From assembly GCA_965644295.1 (NCBI GenBank), contig CBFFRP010000145.1:100610-164609 (forward strand): a stretch of DNA of 64,000 bases. The letters run 5' to 3'. This document shows positions 40,501 through 49,377 of this stretch, piece by piece; position 1 is the first letter of the stretch; the number at the start of each line of letters is the position of its first letter. Below the pieces are notes generated by a model that worked only from the letters and a program-made list of their open reading frames with translations, did no database searches and was not told the origin of the DNA. The translations under genes were made by a program, and so were the position numbers. The stretch is from Paraphysomonas bandaiensis (Eukaryota; Protista; Chrysophyceae).

Positions 40501-42293
40501 GGTACGGGTTCTTATATACCTCGTCGACCGATTGAACTAGATGGTGATGGTCGGGTCCGACGCAAACGGCTGCAGCGGAGACTGGCAAACGCGTCAGTTT
40601 TAGGAGAGATTAATATGGTTGAAGTACCGGATGCGCATAATATTGATCTTAACCATGCAGAGACAGAAGATATCAAGATACCAAATTCATATGCCGAGGC
40701 AGAGAGATCTCCACAGTATCAACAATGGAGAAAAGCTCGAATGGTGGAGAAGACATCATTGCTGAAAAGACGTGTCTTGAAGATCGTGAAAATTCCAAGC
40801 GGAGTGAAATTAGTTAGAGCGAAATATGTGCATACGGTGAAGCGAGACATACTAGGGAATATAGTAAAGTACAAGGCTCGGCTAGTGGCATTAGGAAATC
40901 TCCAAGAGAAGAAGGAGGAGGAGCCGTCCACTTTCGCTCCAGTGGTTAAGGGTATAACCATTAGACTAGTGTTAGCGATTGCGTTTATGTTACAGATGCA
41001 TGTGCATCAATTAGATGTATCATCCGCATTTTGCTATGCAGATCTGGAGGATGACGTGTATATGGCACCTCCACCAGATGAGGAATTACTAGCTGGATGG
41101 TGTTTTCAACTAATCAAGGCATTGTATGGACTGCGATCTTCACCGCGACAGTGGAATAAACATATTGACAAGTTTATTAAATCATTGCATTTTACTCCGT
41201 GTATTTTGGATACGTGTTTGTATATGCGATGGAGTAACGGAAAACTGCATTTATTATTGATATATGTTGATGATATCATAATTGCATCCGCTGATCTGAC
41301 TTACTTGGAAAGCGTAAAGCGTAGGTTCTGTGAAACATTCGAGATGCATGATCTGGGAGTGTGTAAGCGATTTCTGAACATCAGGATAACCAGAGGAGAA
41401 AATTGGTATATGTTAGATCAATCTGAGTATGCTAAGAATATTATCAAGAAATTCAGCTCAGTTATGGGAAAGAGTAGTAAGAATAAGGAGGCCCCACTAC
41501 CTACTAATGTTCAGGATCTGTTGGCAGAGGAACGTGAACTTACGGAGGAGCAGAAGCAGTGGGTTGACTCATTTCCGTATCGGCAAATTATTGGAGCAGT
41601 GTTGTATCTAGCAATGCATACTAGACCTGATCTGGCTTATGCAGTGGGGTTATTGTCTCGATTTAGTAGTTGTCCGACATATGCATCGTGCAAACTGGCG
41701 ATTCACTTATTGAAATATTTGCGTGGAACAATAGATGAGGGCATCAGATTCAGTGGGAGTGAGTTCGACTTACATGTGTTCAGTGATTCAGATTGGGCTG
41801 GTGATAGACTGACTCGGCGATCGACAACAGGATACATTGTGTTCTTATGTGCAGGCGCATTGGCCTGGCAGTCTAAACTACAGACCACAGTTGCAACTTC
41901 GAGCATGGAATCTGAATATATGGCGGAGTATGCGGCTATGCAAGAACTGGTGTGGCTTCGGGGGTGTTCAAGGAGCTCGGGCTCTTAGTTGCGAAGCCGA
42001 CTCCATTCTTTATGGATAGCAAGAGTGCGAAAGATCTCTCCGAGAATCCTGTGTATCATAAGAGGTCGAAGCATATAGACATCAAGTATCACTGGGTGAG
42101 AGAGCATGTAAATGGAAAATTTCCTACGGCAAAGTTGATTCATGTGTCGACGGATGATATGGCGGCTGATATTTTCACGAAGGCATTGTCAACGAAACTT
42201 TTCAGTCGTCATGAGAAAACTATTACCGGGGTTAAGAGAAGTGTGTCAACCAGAGTTGAGGAGCAGCAGAAGAAGCGACCCCGAAGAGGTTAA
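37582..42293 (+). CDS. Copia gag-pol polyprotein with one frameshift in RNase H (about 41960)
   Basis: Zinc knuckle CRNCKSKEHLAIDC; protease YIDTCCS; integrase HRRAGH...CDVC, ADIA, ADGAGE, IEERK; RT KYKARLVA, LDVSSAF, YVDD; RNase H FSDSDWAG, then DSKSA, RSKHIDIKYH and ADIFTK in the next frame. Confidence 0.95.
37599..37612 (+). promoter_or_regulatory. Primer binding site TGGTAGCGAGCGAG (probably initiator tRNA-Met)
   Basis: Immediately follows the LTR; complementary to a tRNA 3' end ...CGCUCGCU-A-CCA, whose U72 fits the A1:U72 initiator signature. Confidence 0.7.
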
Positions 42294-42466
42294 AGGTGTG
42301 TTTTAGTGGGTGAGAATCCCACATAACTATATATCTAGTTGACTGCTAGTTATATATGTATCTTGATAAGATTTCACATCTATTTTACCTATGAGACTAG
42401 TTTATAGCATGAAGATCACTGTACTCATTGTTGTTTCGTATCACTGCATTCTACATTGAGTGGGAG

Positions 42467-42759
42467 TATTAGAATATGGACTGTATCCTAGTATATTCAA
42501 TGTGGTACTTGAAGACAATGTACGAGAATACAGTGAAGTATGGTGATGTGTAGATGCTGTTATGATATTGAGAAAACTGAAATAGTTTGCTCTTTCAAGA
42601 TATGTTTAGTAGCGAAAGGTCTACAGAAGTAGTGATTTATGCATGGCACAAAACGAGCTTGTGTTGTTTAACACAATTGGTGTAAACGATATTAATAAAT
42701 CTATCTAGTCTAACAACTTAATCTCTCTTTGATCTAAGTAAAATGAGCTTTTCCCAACA
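42467..42759 (+). repeat. 3' LTR, preceded by PPT GAGTGGGAG (42458-42466)
   Basis: Direct repeat of 37306-37598, followed by the TSD CAAGG. Confidence 0.97.
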
Positions 42760-43228
42760 CAAGGTAGATGCATGTGCTGGACGAGTGCACAAAATGGAGG
42801 GAAGACATTATTGGAGTCAGCTTGATTTGTAACATTCACTACTACTGTACTAAGTCTTAGCATTCCATCGTGCAATATCTAGGTTACGCGTGCGTATGAT
42901 GAGCTACTGCGCCTAAATGAACTATATGACGATATAATATCGTAAATTGGTACCAACTTCATATATATTCTATTCTACTATTCCCTTTAAGAATTCTAAA
43001 TAATATTAAGTTAGGGATAAATAATACTTTAGCTTTCACAAGCGAACGACCTCTGCATCTCAAAGACAGCGAGCAAAATGCACCAAAGAAACTATTCTAA
43101 ATGTAACGCTGACATGAATACAGACTATACAATGCTAATATCCTAATGAGCACTTAAACCCAAAGTAAAAAATCAGATATGATATCAATACGTAAGCACT
43201 CATTAATGCCACACTCAATGAGCACGCA

Positions 43229-46200
43229 TTAGAAATTGGCGCTATACCCACGCAATGCTGCGGCAAAGTCGCGGGCGATCTTTTTAACTTCATTTGAAAC
43301 ATGATTTCCTCCGGTTTCGTTGGCGACAGGAGAAGCTGTTGTGGCCACTCTAAGGTTACTCTGGGATCTTGCCATATCCCAGGGCACACAGAACCACGGG
43401 GTATGTGCTTTCTCTGCCATGGCGTGGAACATAACACAGAAGGACACATACCGCTCTATTGCGGCCACACGACACTCATAGAACTGCTGCACCACTTGTT
43501 GATAGTCTTGCACACGTTGTGCTTGTCTATCTAGTCGACCAGCAAATGCAGTGCGTACGGCAGGGTCGAATGACTTGGACTGCGTCTTAGAGGATACCCC
43601 CGCCTTTAGTTGTTTCATGGTAAGCATTCCTGCTTCTTTAGCATTGAGCACAAAATCAGTGAACATATCCCCGTGTTCCACATTAGGATTGATATGCTGG
43701 GCGCCGTACGGAATATCTGCCCACTCGGCGCGGCCCTTCACTGCAGCAGAGTAGGCGTTGCTAAGCTGTCGTAATATCGCGCCTGTGAATGGCTTTGCGG
43801 CCAAATACAACCGTTCGTATAGGTACTCGTCCACAAACTTACGTCGATTGTCACTCTTTAACACCACATGCCTCGCAAGTCCCAAATTCGGAACGTAAGG
43901 ATTATGTCCAACGGTTATGACATCGGGCCCAGCCCCCATGCCAGAGTATGCTGGGTTCTCAATAAACACTGCCTGCTTCACAGCCAGTAATACAGCGGCT
44001 TCAGACTTGGCTATAAAATATCATAAAATTATATTTCCTCAAAAATTGTAATGTGATGAAGTCTTACCAAGGACACAAAGTCTACCATCTGGGCGACCAA
44101 CAGCAAGCAATACTCCCCGTACAACGCGATGAGTGAATCTATGCACAAAGTGATCCAATCCCGAGGCACCATGTACGTTAGGCATGCAAAAGGAATAAGC
44201 CTGGGAGAATAGCTTCGAAGCAAAGTTTTCTGTGAGCTGGTGAATGCAGGGGGAGTCAACGACAACAATGGTGCGTCCTCCCATTCGCGCCGCAATTGGG
44301 CGACCAGTCACCCACCTCAAAAGCCAGGTCAAGTTTTTCCCAATGTAAATAAACCATACAGCATCAACGATCTGAAGAGTGAGTCCAACAAGCGTCCAGC
44401 CGATCCCTTGATTTACCATAGTACGTGGATATCGAGGGCTCCATGCGAGAACACCATTACCGATGTCAACATTCGCCGCCTTGAGAATCTCCACAATTAC
44501 CGTTCCTAAAGTCCCGAAAAGTGGTAAACCGAAGCCAACAGACACAAAGAGATATACGGCGACGAATATAACTACCATCCAGGGCTCCCTAACATGGTCC
44601 CCCCATGCCTGCCCAGCCTGACGTAGCTCCTCATTCGTCTGCTTCTCGTCCTCATCAAGAGGGTCGCCATACTTATCAAACCCAACGATGCGCTCAATGT
44701 TCGGAATCATGGATGTAGCCATGATGGTATGAATATCGTCAATACAACCATCTGTCAAGTTCATTAAGATTGTCTGTCTTCCCTGCTCGTACCAAGTAAC
44801 GAATTCCTTTCCTGTATCCTGACGACTATTGTCAGGCTCTTCTGGTGGAGGATGGCCGGCTGCTTCTGCTTCCTCGCGAAGCCTCTTTCGTCGGGCTGCG
44901 GTTTTTCGCCGGACCAGCTTCCGGAGCAAGTCTGTCGCAGCTGAGTATTCCCACTTGTGGATTAAACGACTACCGGCGAACTTTTTACGTGTAGCCACCA
45001 CTAAATGAAGGATCAGTCGCGTAAGAGTATGAAAAGTTGCAACAATAGCCGCAGAGGTTGGTTCAGCTGGTCGGTATCCGGAATAGTTATTGAAAACACG
45101 GTTCTTGCCGTACACCTTTCCACGCATTTGATAATCTTCCTTCATGGCCACCTCCATTTTACTGTTAAAACACCCCGTTAGAAGAAACATACGATCGCCA
45201 ACTAGAGATGCGATCTTGCGAGTTGCATGGAGAGTAGCGAAGGTCTGTCCAGATTGAGAAATCAATAGTGCACATGTGTGATTATCAATGCGACGGGGTA
45301 AAACTGCGTCGGTTCCAGGAAAAAAGACTTTGCCAGGTGCATCATCCGCCAGGCCGAGCAGTTTGTTAGCACTGACTGTAACAATGTTGAGTTGGGGAAA
45401 TATGGTACGCAGATCAGCTGCGAACTGCTCCGCCACCCATAACGACGCCTCCACTCCACCTATTGATACAATATTAAGGCAATGAAAAACTCACGAAACT
45501 GTATACCTATGAGCAGATCAGTAGAATCCGTCTGTGTGTCGACCCTATGTTTCATACAACGAATCATGTACTTGCAGAACTCTTCTGCCACGATATACTC
45601 GACAGACTTGGTGTTCGACCACGCTACAAATAACACGCAGATTAGCAATGAAAAAGTAGAAGCTCTTACAGTGTTATACCCCTGTCAATAGCATCCAGTA
45701 TTCCAGGAGTCATTGCCAGATCGGCAGCCACTAAATCAGCCTTTGGATCATATGGTATAGGAGCGGAAGTGATAGTGACTGCACGATCCACTAACTCTTG
45801 TCCCATAGCCTCGCAATCAGTTACAAGTGAGTAGGAAAGTATCTCCACCCCTCCACGCATGCGTATTCCTGCTCGTTCTCCGAATTCCTTCCCTCGCGTG
45901 ACATTACCCAAAGTTTTGCGGATAACGGGCCCCTCATATATACTGGGGGCGGCAGGCTGTTTTTCAAAATTATCTCCCTCTTTCTCCTCCTCTGTCTGTT
46001 TCCGAATGTGGCCAAAGCGTCCCTCAATAAATAGCCGAGGCGTACCCAAGCGCATAACCTCACCTTTGGAGTCCAAGTCTATGCGCTCGGGGAGCCATCC
46101 CCCATCAACATCTACCGGCACCGCAATAGCTTCTGCCTCCGATCCGTATAAGCATAGCGGAAGATCCGGGCCAAACGACACCGACATCGGTTGACCCTTG

Positions 46201-47522
46201 CTGGCTATCACAACAACACCGGGTTCGATGGTGCAGTGGCACTGAATGCCGAACGAACCTTCTGCACGAGACAATACCTCAGTGAGAGTAGTATACAGAT
46301 CATTGCGGAGAAATGACCGAATAGTAAGACTCACAAATGCCAGACGTTCCTTCCTACTCCACGTATTGGCATTGAAGCGGTCCGCATAAGAATCAAATTG
46401 AGAAAGCACAGCATCCACAAACTGAGCTTCACCGGCAGGATCAATGCTGTATTCCACGATCTTCTTCTTCGACCCCATAACATCTTTGTCCTGTCTAACC
46501 TTGATGATGTTGTTTTTATGCATATGGAAAACTGGTTCAAATAGTGCTTCTGCCCAATCCTGAAAAAACTCAAAAGTTGGAAATACATTAGGCGCCTCCT
46601 TGCATAGCTGCTCGCCATCGCACACATCATTGACGGACTTGAGCACACGAACATATCCCAGACGACAGGCCGGTCCCCACCTACCCTGTACTCGCATTAC
46701 ATCCATCAAGCCAGCCAACTTTGGAGAGTCCCCTTTTGTTAAATTTTCTGTCCAAAGGACTCGCTCAAGCCATAGACCTAACTCTCCATTCACCACAGTG
46801 GAAGAGTACATCTCAAAAGCGTCAAAATCACCGTTGTGTGTCAGATGCAGACAGTAGCTCACATTTGTTGACTCAAATTTACCCGTAATAGAGTTCAAGC
46901 GCCAAATACGCTCCACTCGGGGGGGAACCCACTCATGGGGGTGGAGCTCAGACTCCACATTTTTAGAGGACGTTGCAAAACGTGTATGCCCAACGAATGT
47001 AACTGCGAATGACGGGTCAGGTTGTCTGCCAAATTTCTTCAAAAATTTCTTGGCCAAATCGGCGGCAAGAGGGTACCGTTTACGAGCTACACATCTTGTG
47101 CGAAACATGTTAGGGATCGGCTCGAATGCGCCGGCAAACTTAGCCTCATATGACGACTGCGCTGTCCTTGTGCTAGTCTCTTTACGGTACTCGATACTGC
47201 TAATACCACCCGCTTGCCCTCCTCGTACCTCTGTGGCCGCTGTCTGAGCCTCCAAAATAAAGAGCGGTTTCAGCATCTCCGCATTACCCGCATGCGCACT
47301 GGTGGACTCGATTACATTATACTTCCCGCTGCTTGACTTGTTGTGCGTCCAGTTGGCGTCCCCCACAACTCGCAGGCCGTGAAGTTTACTCACCTCATGA
47401 AGTGTCTGGTGCAGAGAGGCATCCATCGCATCCTGAGGAGCGCTCTTCTTCTCGAACTCATCAGCTGCACAGCCCGTGGAGCCTTCTTTCCCCAACATTA
47501 TCAAACCGAAGTTACCGCACAT
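43229..47522 (-). CDS. Large GlmS-like protein: class-II (Ntn) glutamine amidotransferase + SIS domain + transmembrane hairpin + SIS-like C-terminus, 3 introns
   Basis: MCGNFG (Cys2 nucleophile), RGGQAGG, GHTRFATS, HPH, THNGD; SIS motif ISQSGQTFATL; two hydrophobic helices. ORFs 45666-47522, 45460-45648, 44039-45454 and 43229-43981 join through short GT-AG introns. Confidence 0.85.
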
Positions 47523-48095
47523 GGTTATGATTATGACACTCTATCTGGAGCTTTATTGATACATGCAAACGATCAGATATCCTATCCGCATATACAACTA
47601 TACACGCAGCACATATGGAGTCCCATACACTGCAGTGTACGCACAGAGAACAATGCGCTGTGGCTCTCTTTAAACACATGCACACAGCACACTGCACACA
47701 GTCCTACACAGCACAATGGAAAGAATACTGCGGTCTACAGCCGTACAGCACCTGGAGTATACAGGTACTGTATACCGTACAGTTTCTACAGTGTTCGTTC
47801 GCAGTGTGGGTTGGTATTCCAGAGTACAGTGAGAATCCTACAAGCATATAGAGTACACATACAGCAGTATCTTGTTCTCTGATCTGTGCAATATACGAGG
47901 ATCTATCTGCTGTAGCGAATACCATGGAATACGGTAACTACCAGCAGTATACACAATATACGAGGACGCACAGAGGGGTGTCTGTTGCAACATCTCGTTC
48001 ATCTCATCATCTTCTTGTTCCATTGGCATTCTACTCCTTATCAGTCCTCATGACTTGGTGAGAAGCCGCTCCTGGTATTTTCTTGAACCCGTATA

Positions 48096-49377
48096 ATGAA
48101 GAAGCGCTCCCTCCGCGACATTATCGAGCAAGGCGATGTCTCATCTCTGCAAAGAGTGTTGGATGACGCTGACGACGATATCAGTGCGATATTCAACCAA
48201 AGATTCGAGGTACATGTTGCTTCTATCCACACTGTGTCGAATTTACAAAGTGTTGAACTCTGAGTAGGAGAATAGCTCTCCGCTGCACGCAGCTGTGTGG
48301 TTTGGGCAATCTGAAATAGCAGAGGAGCTGTTGGACTGGGGTTGTCCAATAGATCTGAGAGACAATGTAACTATTTCGTATGATTACCATTCCAATGAGA
48401 CGTTGTATGACTAAACAGGCTGGAGCAACTGCATTTCATTATTCTGTTTGGAAGAATAACATTGATATCATGATGATGCTACTTGAAAAGGGAGCAGACG
48501 TGTATGACCTTGATAATGTTCGTATCCAGTAATTTTACCGTAGATATAGTCATTGTCATTTACTTTTACAGAAAGATAACACAGCGCTTCATTTGGCTGC
48601 TCGTAAAGGATTTAAAGCTATTGCTGTTATGCTTATTGCTCGAGGACTAAATGTAAACAGCGCTGACGTTGTACGTAGTTTATATTGTGTACGCTGTCCC
48701 ACACTGAGTGTTGCTCAATAGGATGGCAACACACCGCTTCACAAGGCCGCTATGGAAGGTCGTACGGTAATGGTACTAGAGCTTCTTGAACATGGCGCCA
48801 GATTGATGGCAACTAATAACGTATGTGAGTTGTAATAGTTTTTTTGTTGTAATACTGCGCAGGAGGGAATGACAGCGCTACACCTGGCGTGTCTAAACGG
48901 AAATACGGAAACTGCAGAGGCACTTTTAGATGCTGGAATTCCTATTGGAGAGTTAGACACGGTATATGATCAGGTTTCACCTTCATTGTGTCTTACTGGA
49001 TTCGCTAGCATGGTCGCACTCCGTATCATATGGCATGTCTTAGGTTCAATGAAGAGACTATCACAATGTTGCTGAATCGAGGCTGTGACATCGACGTAAA
49101 AGCAGCGGTTAGTGGAATGTTGTGCGTGAGGCTCCTTCTTCTCTTGATAATTTGTGCAGGATGGCCGTACTGGAGCTGAGTCGGTTGCGATTCGTGAAGA
49201 CCGGTCGAAAATGACAGCAATGTTGGTACGTATGATAACATTGCTGTGCTTAGGTCATTGACTTATGCGAATAATCAGAGCCATATCTTCAATGAGAGGG
49301 AACAGAAGGCCAAAAACGTGGCGAGAAAAAAGCAGCAGCTCAGCGACCTCAAAGTTGCTTTGAAAGATGGTATATGA
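48096..49377 (+). CDS. Ankyrin-repeat protein, at least 9 exons
   Basis: Exons encode SPLHAAV, TAFHYSV, TALHLAA, TPLHKAA, TALHLAC and TPYHMAC repeats separated by 42-54 nt GT-AG introns. The 3' end may splice once more to about 49461. Confidence 0.9.

Follow-up and report, generated by a model that had tools for sequence, protein, structure and literature searches.

The glucosamine-6-phosphate synthases GlmS and GFAT (EC 2.6.1.16, TIGR01135) are among the best-studied amidotransferases and gate entry to amino-sugar synthesis. Enzymes of two other kinds each resemble part of their architecture. PurF, AsnB and GltS, which are class II or N-terminal nucleophile (Ntn) amidotransferases, have the same N-terminal Cys nucleophile and glutaminase fold, whereas their acceptor domains are unrelated to SIS. 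The NagB-II glucosamine-6-phosphate deaminase, the FrlB/FraB deglycases and the AgaS-type ketose/aldose isomerases have no glutaminase domain; these soluble enzymes keep a catalytic Glu/His pair, which is retained across the GlmS, NagB-II and FrlB/FraB relatives. Here, we describe a gene in a window of 64,000 nucleotides of DNA from the marine flagellate Paraphysomonas bandaiensis (contig CBFFRP010000145.1, positions 100,610 to 164,609; window positions and residue numbers are used below). The product of this gene belongs to what is a large, old and uncharacterised sister family of GlmS/GFAT. The family keeps the GlmS domain order together with a near-invariant glutaminase site, departs from GlmS at the isomerase positions, and carries a two-helix hydrophobic hairpin between its SIS domains.

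A four-exon gene with GlmS architecture

The gene occupies 47522-43229 on the minus strand, as do all of its features given below, and it is an expressed gene of four exons. When public sequencing runs are compared with window positions 43100-47700, a transcript contig of 4422 nucleotides (run X1) covers 43100-47547 minus exactly the three introns. A second study (X4) and a polyA marine metatranscriptome (X5) show identical splice joints, and a DNA run (X14) contains the unspliced form. As a single transcript contig carries all four exons, the open reading frames belong to one gene. The initial annotation had proposed a spliced protein of roughly 1380 residues. This size holds, since sequence reading gives 1377 residues from a coding sequence of 4134 nucleotides on one mRNA; the annotation had worked from three open reading frames, overlooking a 117-nucleotide exon at 45623-45507.

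The coding region from ATG to stop (43229-47522) is defined by the open reading frames, the transcript contig and identity with a public gene call, P0274. Exon 1 (45680-47522) encodes residues 1-614 and one base of codon 615, comprising the class II glutaminase with a large helical insertion and a linker, as indicated by 88 homologues, an Atlas match to GATase_6 and hhalign. Intron 1 (45624-45679, 56 nucleotides) is spliced out in contigs from runs X1 and X4. The short exon 2 (45507-45623) completes the linker and adds the first strand of SIS1; it is supported by the sequence, the transcript contig and residues 608-645 of P0274 at 100% identity. Intron 2 (45460-45506, 47 nucleotides) is spliced out in X1 and X5, with a 2-base ambiguity at the joint. 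Exon 3 (44068-45459) holds SIS1, a eukaryote-specific helix, the hydrophobic hairpin and SIS2 strands one to three, and is followed by intron 3 (44011-44067, 57 nucleotides), which is spliced out in X1, X4 and X5. Exon 4 (43229-44010) completes SIS2, which here contains a eukaryote-specific insertion, and goes on to encode the final long helix and the conserved C-terminal tail up to the stop codon. Homologues, the structural model and structural alignment support these last two assignments, and all three introns are bounded by GT..AG.

An in-frame stop lies 7 codons 5' of the ATG at 47522, which places Cys2 directly after the start Met (codons 47522-47517). All of the motifs quoted in the initial annotation are present on the minus strand: Met1-Cys2, GHTRFATS, HNGD, SQSGQT, the two hydrophobic segments, ENFASKLFSQAY at residues 1064-1075 and SQSNLRVATTASPV at residues 1333-1346. 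The gene call P0274 (1369 residues, called on a transcript) is 100% identical to the four exon translations, in the same order. It begins at Met9 and drops Met1 to Ile8, the catalytic Cys2 included, so that users of this record would wrongly infer a missing nucleophile. Searches on the window protein were made exon by exon, or with P0274 as the joined form minus its first eight residues.

A word search with exon 1 identifies 88 relatives, and all four parts of the gene are colinear with a 1497-residue EukProt protein and a 1273-residue Chroococcidiopsis protein. Chance resemblance is excluded by homologues at E values from 0 to 1e-100. For comparison with known enzymes, a family profile was built from 89 diverse members, which are the basis of the residue counts given throughout; the GlmS profile combined E. 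coli GlmS with five glmS genes from genomes that carry both families. The two profiles align with hhalign at 97.9% probability (E 3.4e-13), colinearly from family positions 1-852 to GlmS positions 1-600. Against PDB sequences, the only matches of the family profile are GFAT(-1) and GlmS. The proposed relationship to GlmS is thus upheld at a sequence identity of just 10-13%.

The predicted structures lead to the same relatives. The AlphaFold model of a compact cyanobacterial homologue, P0079, is confident (predicted local distance difference test score, pLDDT, 93.6; predicted template-modelling score 0.92), and Foldseek ranks human GFAT-1 and E. coli GlmS highest, aligned along the entire chain (6r4j, 2j6h and 1jxa; E ~4e-19; template-modelling score 0.71-0.76 by target; 11-12% identity). 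PurF (1ao0) is matched at E 1.7e-7. A model of residues 593-1377 of the window protein (P0274:585-1369) has a mean pLDDT of 90.4. With VIA-align, this C-terminal half aligns with GlmS/GFAT isomerase domains at Z 26-27 and a root-mean-square deviation of 2.8-2.9 Å over ~350 residues, to the last GlmS residue. It also resembles the NagB-II, FrlB/FraB and AgaS-type enzymes at Z 19-25 (8fdb, 8glr, 9ou6, 3c3j, 2cb0), and an ESM Atlas search is consistent with a GlmS/GFAT-like C-terminal half. Taken in aggregate, the profile and structural comparisons show the domain order of GlmS: a class II glutaminase with an N-terminal Cys, then two SIS domains, then a conserved C-terminal tail.

This relationship is largely invisible to standard sequence searches. 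Pfam gives no significant match for any exon or for full P0274; neither the GATase_6/7 models nor the SIS model (PF01380) matches the corresponding domains. A search of PDB sequences with individual exons returned nothing significant, and NCBIfam gave weak scores of 13-27 bits to GlmS models, below their cut-offs of 381-418 bits. For TIGR01135, the scores of exon 1, P0274 and P0079 are 12.8, 18.9 and 21.7 bits against a cut-off of 418, which leaves them outside GlmS/GFAT by score; NF001484 scores are 21-33 bits against 381. Consistent with these values, a TIGR01135 scan of the host genome did not pick up the locus. For exon 1, the Atlas feature search points to GATase_6 at 0.90. Literature searches found no description of this GlmS-like hairpin family, although their coverage was limited and this is not proof of absence.

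Conservation within the family is strong. The alignment contains 81 positions that are kept in at least 90% of the 89 members, and the window protein has all of them. The alignment itself shows 78 as identical; the remaining three (Cys2-Gly3-Asn4), misaligned there, were read directly from the MCGNFG start. Retention of every near-invariant position indicates that the window protein is a functional member of the family that is under selection.

Catalytic sites and the inserted hairpin

A class II amidotransferase must begin with Met-Cys. The window protein has this start, and Cys2 (47517-47519) is the predicted nucleophile after removal of Met1, equivalent to GlmS Cys1 and present in 86 of the 89 members. 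Arg100 and Gly101 correspond to GlmS Arg26 and Gly27 (88 and 89 of 89). The Q-loop of GlmS, Arg73 to His77, aligns with GHTRFATS at residues 178-185 (46968-46991; H 89/89, R 87/89, T 89/89), in which Arg181 is the equivalent of Arg73 and Thr184 that of Thr76; His194 corresponds to GlmS His86 (87/89). The oxyanion hole of GlmS, Asn98 and Gly99, is represented by Asn230 and Gly231 within HNGD 229-232 (46827-46838; N 88/89, G 89/89, D 89/89). The hhalign confidence is 9 at GlmS Cys1, Arg26, Gly27, Arg73 (with the Q-loop), Thr76 and His86, and 7 at Asn98 and Gly99.

The remaining member of the catalytic set, GlmS Asp123, probably corresponds to Asp265 of the Asp265-Ser266 pair (46725-46730; D 88/89, S 89/89). 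The hhalign alignment is unreliable at that site, and the assignment draws on the position of the pair before a helix, as in GlmS. With the Met-Cys start and equivalents of Arg26, Asn98/Gly99 and Asp123, the domain has the features of a class II glutaminase, and the initial description of this half as intact is well founded. It differs from GlmS in the substitution of Asp29 by Gln and of His77 by Ser, and in its helical insertion, which spans ~115 residues in the modelled P0079 and is larger in the window protein.

The phosphosugar-binding motif that had been recognised in SIS1 also proves to be a family feature. SQSGQT at residues 721-726 (45242-45259) aligns at hhalign confidence 9 with the phosphate-binding loop of GlmS, Ser347 to Thr352 (S82, Q64/H23, S86, G88 and T83 of 89), so that Ser721, Gln722, Ser723 and Thr726 are equivalent to Ser347, Gln348, Ser349 and Thr352. 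Ser659 is the equivalent of Ser303 (83/89). This Ser-x-Ser-x-x-Thr loop follows the third strand of an alpha/beta SIS fold, the fold being confirmed by structural alignment.

In SIS2, the helix that bears Lys485 and Glu488 in GlmS corresponds, by the secondary-structure register of the two models, to ENFASKLFSQAY (residues 1064-1075; 44195-44230). Lys1069 is probably the equivalent of Lys485 and is conserved in 84 of 89 members. Following Glu1064, residues 1065-1075 include no Asp or Glu, and the family columns are S78, K84, L78, F81, S57/A29, L59 and S74 of 89. Across family positions 832-838, which correspond to the Glu488 region of the window protein, the acidic residues amount to one Glu, at K833, among 89 members. 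The lack of an acid at the Glu488 position holds in either plausible register. An alternative register for SIS2, taken from an hhalign comparison at E 0.27, was rejected, as the five strands in both models match the five of GlmS and the structural alignment reaches GlmS residue 608.

The position of the Schiff-base lysine, GlmS Lys603, is altered as well. The conserved C-terminal tail runs from Arg1332 to Val1346 (43325-43369) and contains SQSNLRVATTASPV; the ranges aligned with E. coli GlmS (744 to 601, 751 to 608) place Arg1338 opposite Lys603. The initial annotation was correct that this residue is not Lys and was one residue off in choosing Val1339 as its equivalent. In the Arg1338 column, 61 of the 89 members have Arg and 19 have Lys, and the other basic column of the tail is evenly divided between Lys (39) and Arg (39). 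As neither column is uniform, the family has no invariant Lys for Schiff-base formation. Further on, conservation is high (T81, T86 and P84 of 89), and the motif ends in Thr-Thr-Ala-x-Pro-Val. Together, the aligned sequences and models show a SIS2 domain with no apparent counterpart of Glu488 and with Arg in the predicted place of Lys603. The initial view that the isomerase residues appear to be lost is in this way supported. The loss is not lineage-specific; rather, it defines a large, old family whose members occur alongside canonical GlmS/GFAT.

In place of these residues, the family has conserved features of its own. A cluster formed by His1083, Asp1089, His1090, His1093, His1097, Arg1098, Arg1101, Gly1102 and Pro1110-Asp-Gly-Arg1113 (44081-44173; D 82, H 73, H 80, H 83, R 80, R 88 and D 86 of 89) fills the region that holds His504 in GlmS. 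His504 serves ring opening in GlmS and is supplied by the partner subunit; His1090, His1093 and His1097 lie a few residues from its expected position and are candidate equivalents. In SIS2, the loop corresponding to the SIS1 phosphate loop reads PDGR. The Glu/His pair of the NagB-II, FrlB/FraB and AgaS-type enzymes is incomplete in this family.

The insertion between SIS1 and SIS2 has no equivalent in GlmS/GFAT, and we know of no class II enzyme such as PurF, AsnB or GltS with a membrane hairpin of this kind. Hydrophobic helix 1 (residues 947-969; 44513-44581; Kyte-Doolittle 19-residue maximum 2.46) follows the conserved Trp939, His942 and Glu945, the last being Glu in 87 of 89 members. Hydrophobic helix 2 (residues 1006-1027; 44339-44404; maximum 1.64) carries the conserved Asp1019 (86/89). 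Four near-invariant arginines, Arg1035, Arg1040, Arg1045 and Arg1049 (44273-44317; R 89, 88, 89 and 86 of 89), connect helix 2 with the strand that opens SIS2. These two segments are the sole strongly hydrophobic stretches of the window protein, which has no N-terminal targeting sequence. Equivalent pairs are present in cyanobacterial, red-algal, haptophyte and other members, and each model places the segments within long helices, of 41 and 33 residues in the window protein, that separate SIS1 from SIS2. Hydropathy and the models in this way support the initially proposed hairpin across the family, as a putative membrane insertion. Because the predicted membrane segment is a hairpin, both catalytic halves would lie on the same, presumably cytosolic, side.

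The retention of Glu945, Asp1019, the four arginines, the SIS2 cluster and the tail motif argues that the acceptor side of the family looks remodelled rather than decayed.

Distribution and genomic context of the family

A profile search of 1.84 billion cluster representatives identified 2617 at E<=1e-3, and 731 of these at E<=1e-30. The family occurs in cyanobacteria, in other bacteria, and in many algae and protists. Named members come from Ectocarpus, Tribonema, Diacronema, Porphyridium, Chromulina and many cyanobacteria (80 loci in species-representative genomes); the other bacterial members include one Elusimicrobiota genome and one giant Omnitrophota protein. Members are annotated as hypothetical or as 'glutamine amidotransferase type-2 domain-containing'. 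A quick, unrooted FastTree analysis sets the labelled eukaryotes on one side of a well-supported branch, separate from the cyanobacteria, with the window protein among ochrophyte sequences. A possible gene transfer from the cyanobacterial endosymbiont that gave rise to the plastid was also considered; in this tree, which has no root to polarise it, the labelled eukaryotes stand apart from the cyanobacteria and are not nested within them.

Many members are longer than the window protein, which has no N-terminal extension. Of 159 full-length members, 115 (P0112, P0324, P0187, P0116 and P0118 among them) have the Cys-Gly-Asn-Phe-Gly motif at an internal position. In many cyanobacteria ~190 residues precede it, and the residue second before the Cys is a conserved aromatic; 60-300 residues precede it in many eukaryotic-type members and 600-1400 in giant bacterial proteins. 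Pfam finds no domain in these extensions. As the N-terminal nucleophile is internal, the long members would need self-cleavage of a very large pro-domain.

Two members carry additional domains. The bacterial protein P0118 ends in a domain of the glucosamine-6-phosphate isomerase / 6-phosphogluconolactonase type (residues 2332-2450, E 1.6e-7), and its gene context is uninformative; the cyanobacterial P0314 is fused to a WD40 propeller (residues 1200-1590). Separately, the 1028-residue P0079 and the members of its cluster (Oculatella, FACHB-471) bear the NCBI name 'restriction endonuclease, SacI family'. This identity was rejected: current NCBIfam gives P0079 weak GlmS matches only, and the name looks like a misannotation.

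The family coexists with canonical synthases. The host genome has two multi-exon GFAT loci (G000:C214:24669-27477 and G000:C80:381766-384639), and glmS scores above the curated cut-off in 5/5 of the bacterial genomes checked that carry the family. As a canonical glmS or GFAT gene is present in every genome checked, the family does not replace GlmS. Gene structure also differs, the host GFAT genes having many short exons each as against the three short introns of the GlmS-like gene. A second copy of the GlmS-like gene lies on another contig of the same genome (G000:C116:31562-35858, plus strand; loci L094 and L096), with 88-92% protein identity and its four exons arranged in the same way; this copy may be either a paralogue or a diverged haplotype.

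Neighbouring genes were examined at ~60 cyanobacterial loci with usable upstream sequence. At 14 of these, a hybrid histidine-kinase/response-regulator gene is directly upstream on the same strand, mostly across a gap of <=61 nucleotides and often at the end of a run of two or three such genes; among the 14, a Tll0287-like sensor domain, a ParA-like ATPase and a PAS domain occur once each. At ~7 loci the upstream gene encodes a Ser/Thr kinase fused to a periplasmic-binding domain, and at 11 a GGDEF-like gene diverges from the locus. The remaining neighbours include NB-ARC, WD40, CHAT-TPR and PNKP genes. These neighbourhoods are suggestive of a link to signalling, a hint that is weakened by the abundance of signalling genes in these genomes and by the relatedness of the lineages. 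A role in a defence system was considered and dropped after a PADLOC scan, whose models do not include the family, found nothing.

The flanks of the gene in the window contain further coding sequence. Just downstream, open reading frames in shifted frames at 41837-42306 (plus strand) represent the C terminus of a Ty1/copia-type retrotransposon polyprotein; an AT-rich flank extends over 42250-43250. On the other side, short open reading frames with ankyrin-repeat-like sequence at 48096-49075 (plus strand) are probably exons of a neighbouring spliced gene. A GPCR-phosphatase fusion in the neighbourhood first suggested an oomycete, a reading abandoned because the relatives that carry names are ochrophyte, haptophyte and red algae.

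Possible functions of the protein

The reading that we favour, by a narrow measure over an even chance, is that of a membrane-bound glutamine amidotransferase whose phosphorylated acceptor is not processed by the GlmS isomerisation. The protein would lie at the cytosolic face of a membrane and hydrolyse glutamine at Cys2. Ammonia would then pass through a GlmS-like channel, sealed by the conserved tail, to a phosphate-bearing acceptor that may be held by SIS1 and by the arginine-rich, membrane-proximal site. If this acceptor does not undergo the ketose-to-aldose isomerisation of GlmS, the product is probably not glucosamine-6-phosphate. Near-perfect conservation of both the hydrolytic machinery and the channel-sealing tail makes glutamine hydrolysis with ammonia transfer the most economical reading.

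Several observations weigh against this proposal. The absence of Glu488 is read from a secondary-structure register and aligned ranges rather than from a superposition, and that site could be reached by a conserved acid located in another part of the protein (Glu786, Asp1089 or Asp1111). SIS2 and the tail, taken alone, show no significant similarity to GlmS SIS2 by hhalign (E 0.27). Membrane insertion is deduced from hydropathy, and helix 2 is just marginally hydrophobic. Finally, the cyanobacterial neighbours are mostly signalling proteins and not pathway enzymes, which fits a regulatory role at least equally well.

The last of these points leads to the main rival, a rather unlikely one in our estimate: a glutamine and/or sugar-phosphate sensor or signalling component, in which the ligand would shift the conformation of the hairpin or of a partner and no product would be of importance. 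The absence of the catalytic Glu and Lys of GlmS is compatible with such a role, as are the upstream histidine-kinase/response-regulator genes (14 loci), the Ser/Thr kinase genes (~7), the GGDEF-like genes (11), and the NB-ARC, WD40 and CHAT-TPR neighbours or fusions. However, near-invariance in bacteria and eukaryotes extends beyond the binding residues of the glutaminase to its complete catalytic set, and the tail that seals the ammonia channel is also kept, which is more than a sensor requires. The genomic association is itself ambiguous: signalling genes are abundant in filamentous cyanobacteria, the 14 operon-like cases represent few independent events because the lineages concerned are related, and the eukaryotic members have no informative gene context, with the PADLOC scan empty.

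A further possibility is a genuine glucosamine-6-phosphate synthase that is tethered to a membrane, in which the His/Asp cluster and Arg1338, for example, would replace the roles of Glu488 and Lys603. In its favour, the family keeps the GlmS architecture and the SIS1 loop, together with Lys1069 (84/89) and a number of His residues close to where His504 is expected, and the isomerase/lactonase-type domain of P0118 hints at hexose-phosphate or amino-sugar chemistry. Yet the Glu of the Glu/His pair is missing, an Arg is incapable of forming a Schiff base, TIGR01135 scores are 13-29 bits against a cut-off of 418, and a canonical glmS or GFAT is already present in every genome checked. We regard this as improbable. 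Decay into a pseudoenzyme or degenerate paralogue, or a set of open reading frames from separate genes, might have explained why Pfam, NCBIfam and PDB sequence searches recognise no exon. With a single spliced transcript over four exons that is also seen in polyA metatranscriptomes, all 81 near-invariant positions kept, conservation from cyanobacteria to eukaryotes and two confident models, this explanation has next to no probability left and is excluded.

A bolder form of the favoured amidotransferase can be put forward tentatively, with doubt outweighing confidence. The family may represent a new class of membrane-embedded amidotransferase that uses glutamine-derived ammonia either for a phosphorylated acceptor, which would be lipid-linked or otherwise associated with the membrane, or for passage into or across the membrane via the hairpin with its buried Asp. 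Most members would have to cleave off a pro-domain themselves before becoming active.

In sum, marine plankton express a sister family of GlmS/GFAT that comprises hundreds of sequence clusters and that Pfam and NCBIfam do not recognise. Its likeness to GlmS/GFAT extends over the full length in domain order and fold, and includes the glutaminase residues, Ser303, Ser347, Gln348, Ser349 and Thr352 of SIS1, and Lys485. Its differences comprise profile scores of 13-29 bits against cut-offs of 381-418, the glutaminase insertion and hairpin, the changes at Glu488 and Lys603, and its own four arginines, Asp within a helix, and Asp/His/Arg clusters. The costly glutamine-hydrolysing machinery and the ammonia-channel tail have been kept, while the acceptor chemistry appears to have been exchanged and a membrane hairpin gained. 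Confident models and a list of invariant residues make the function directly testable. The finding points to an unrecognised membrane nitrogen-transfer reaction, or to a nitrogen/carbon sensing device, in cyanobacteria and many eukaryotic lineages.

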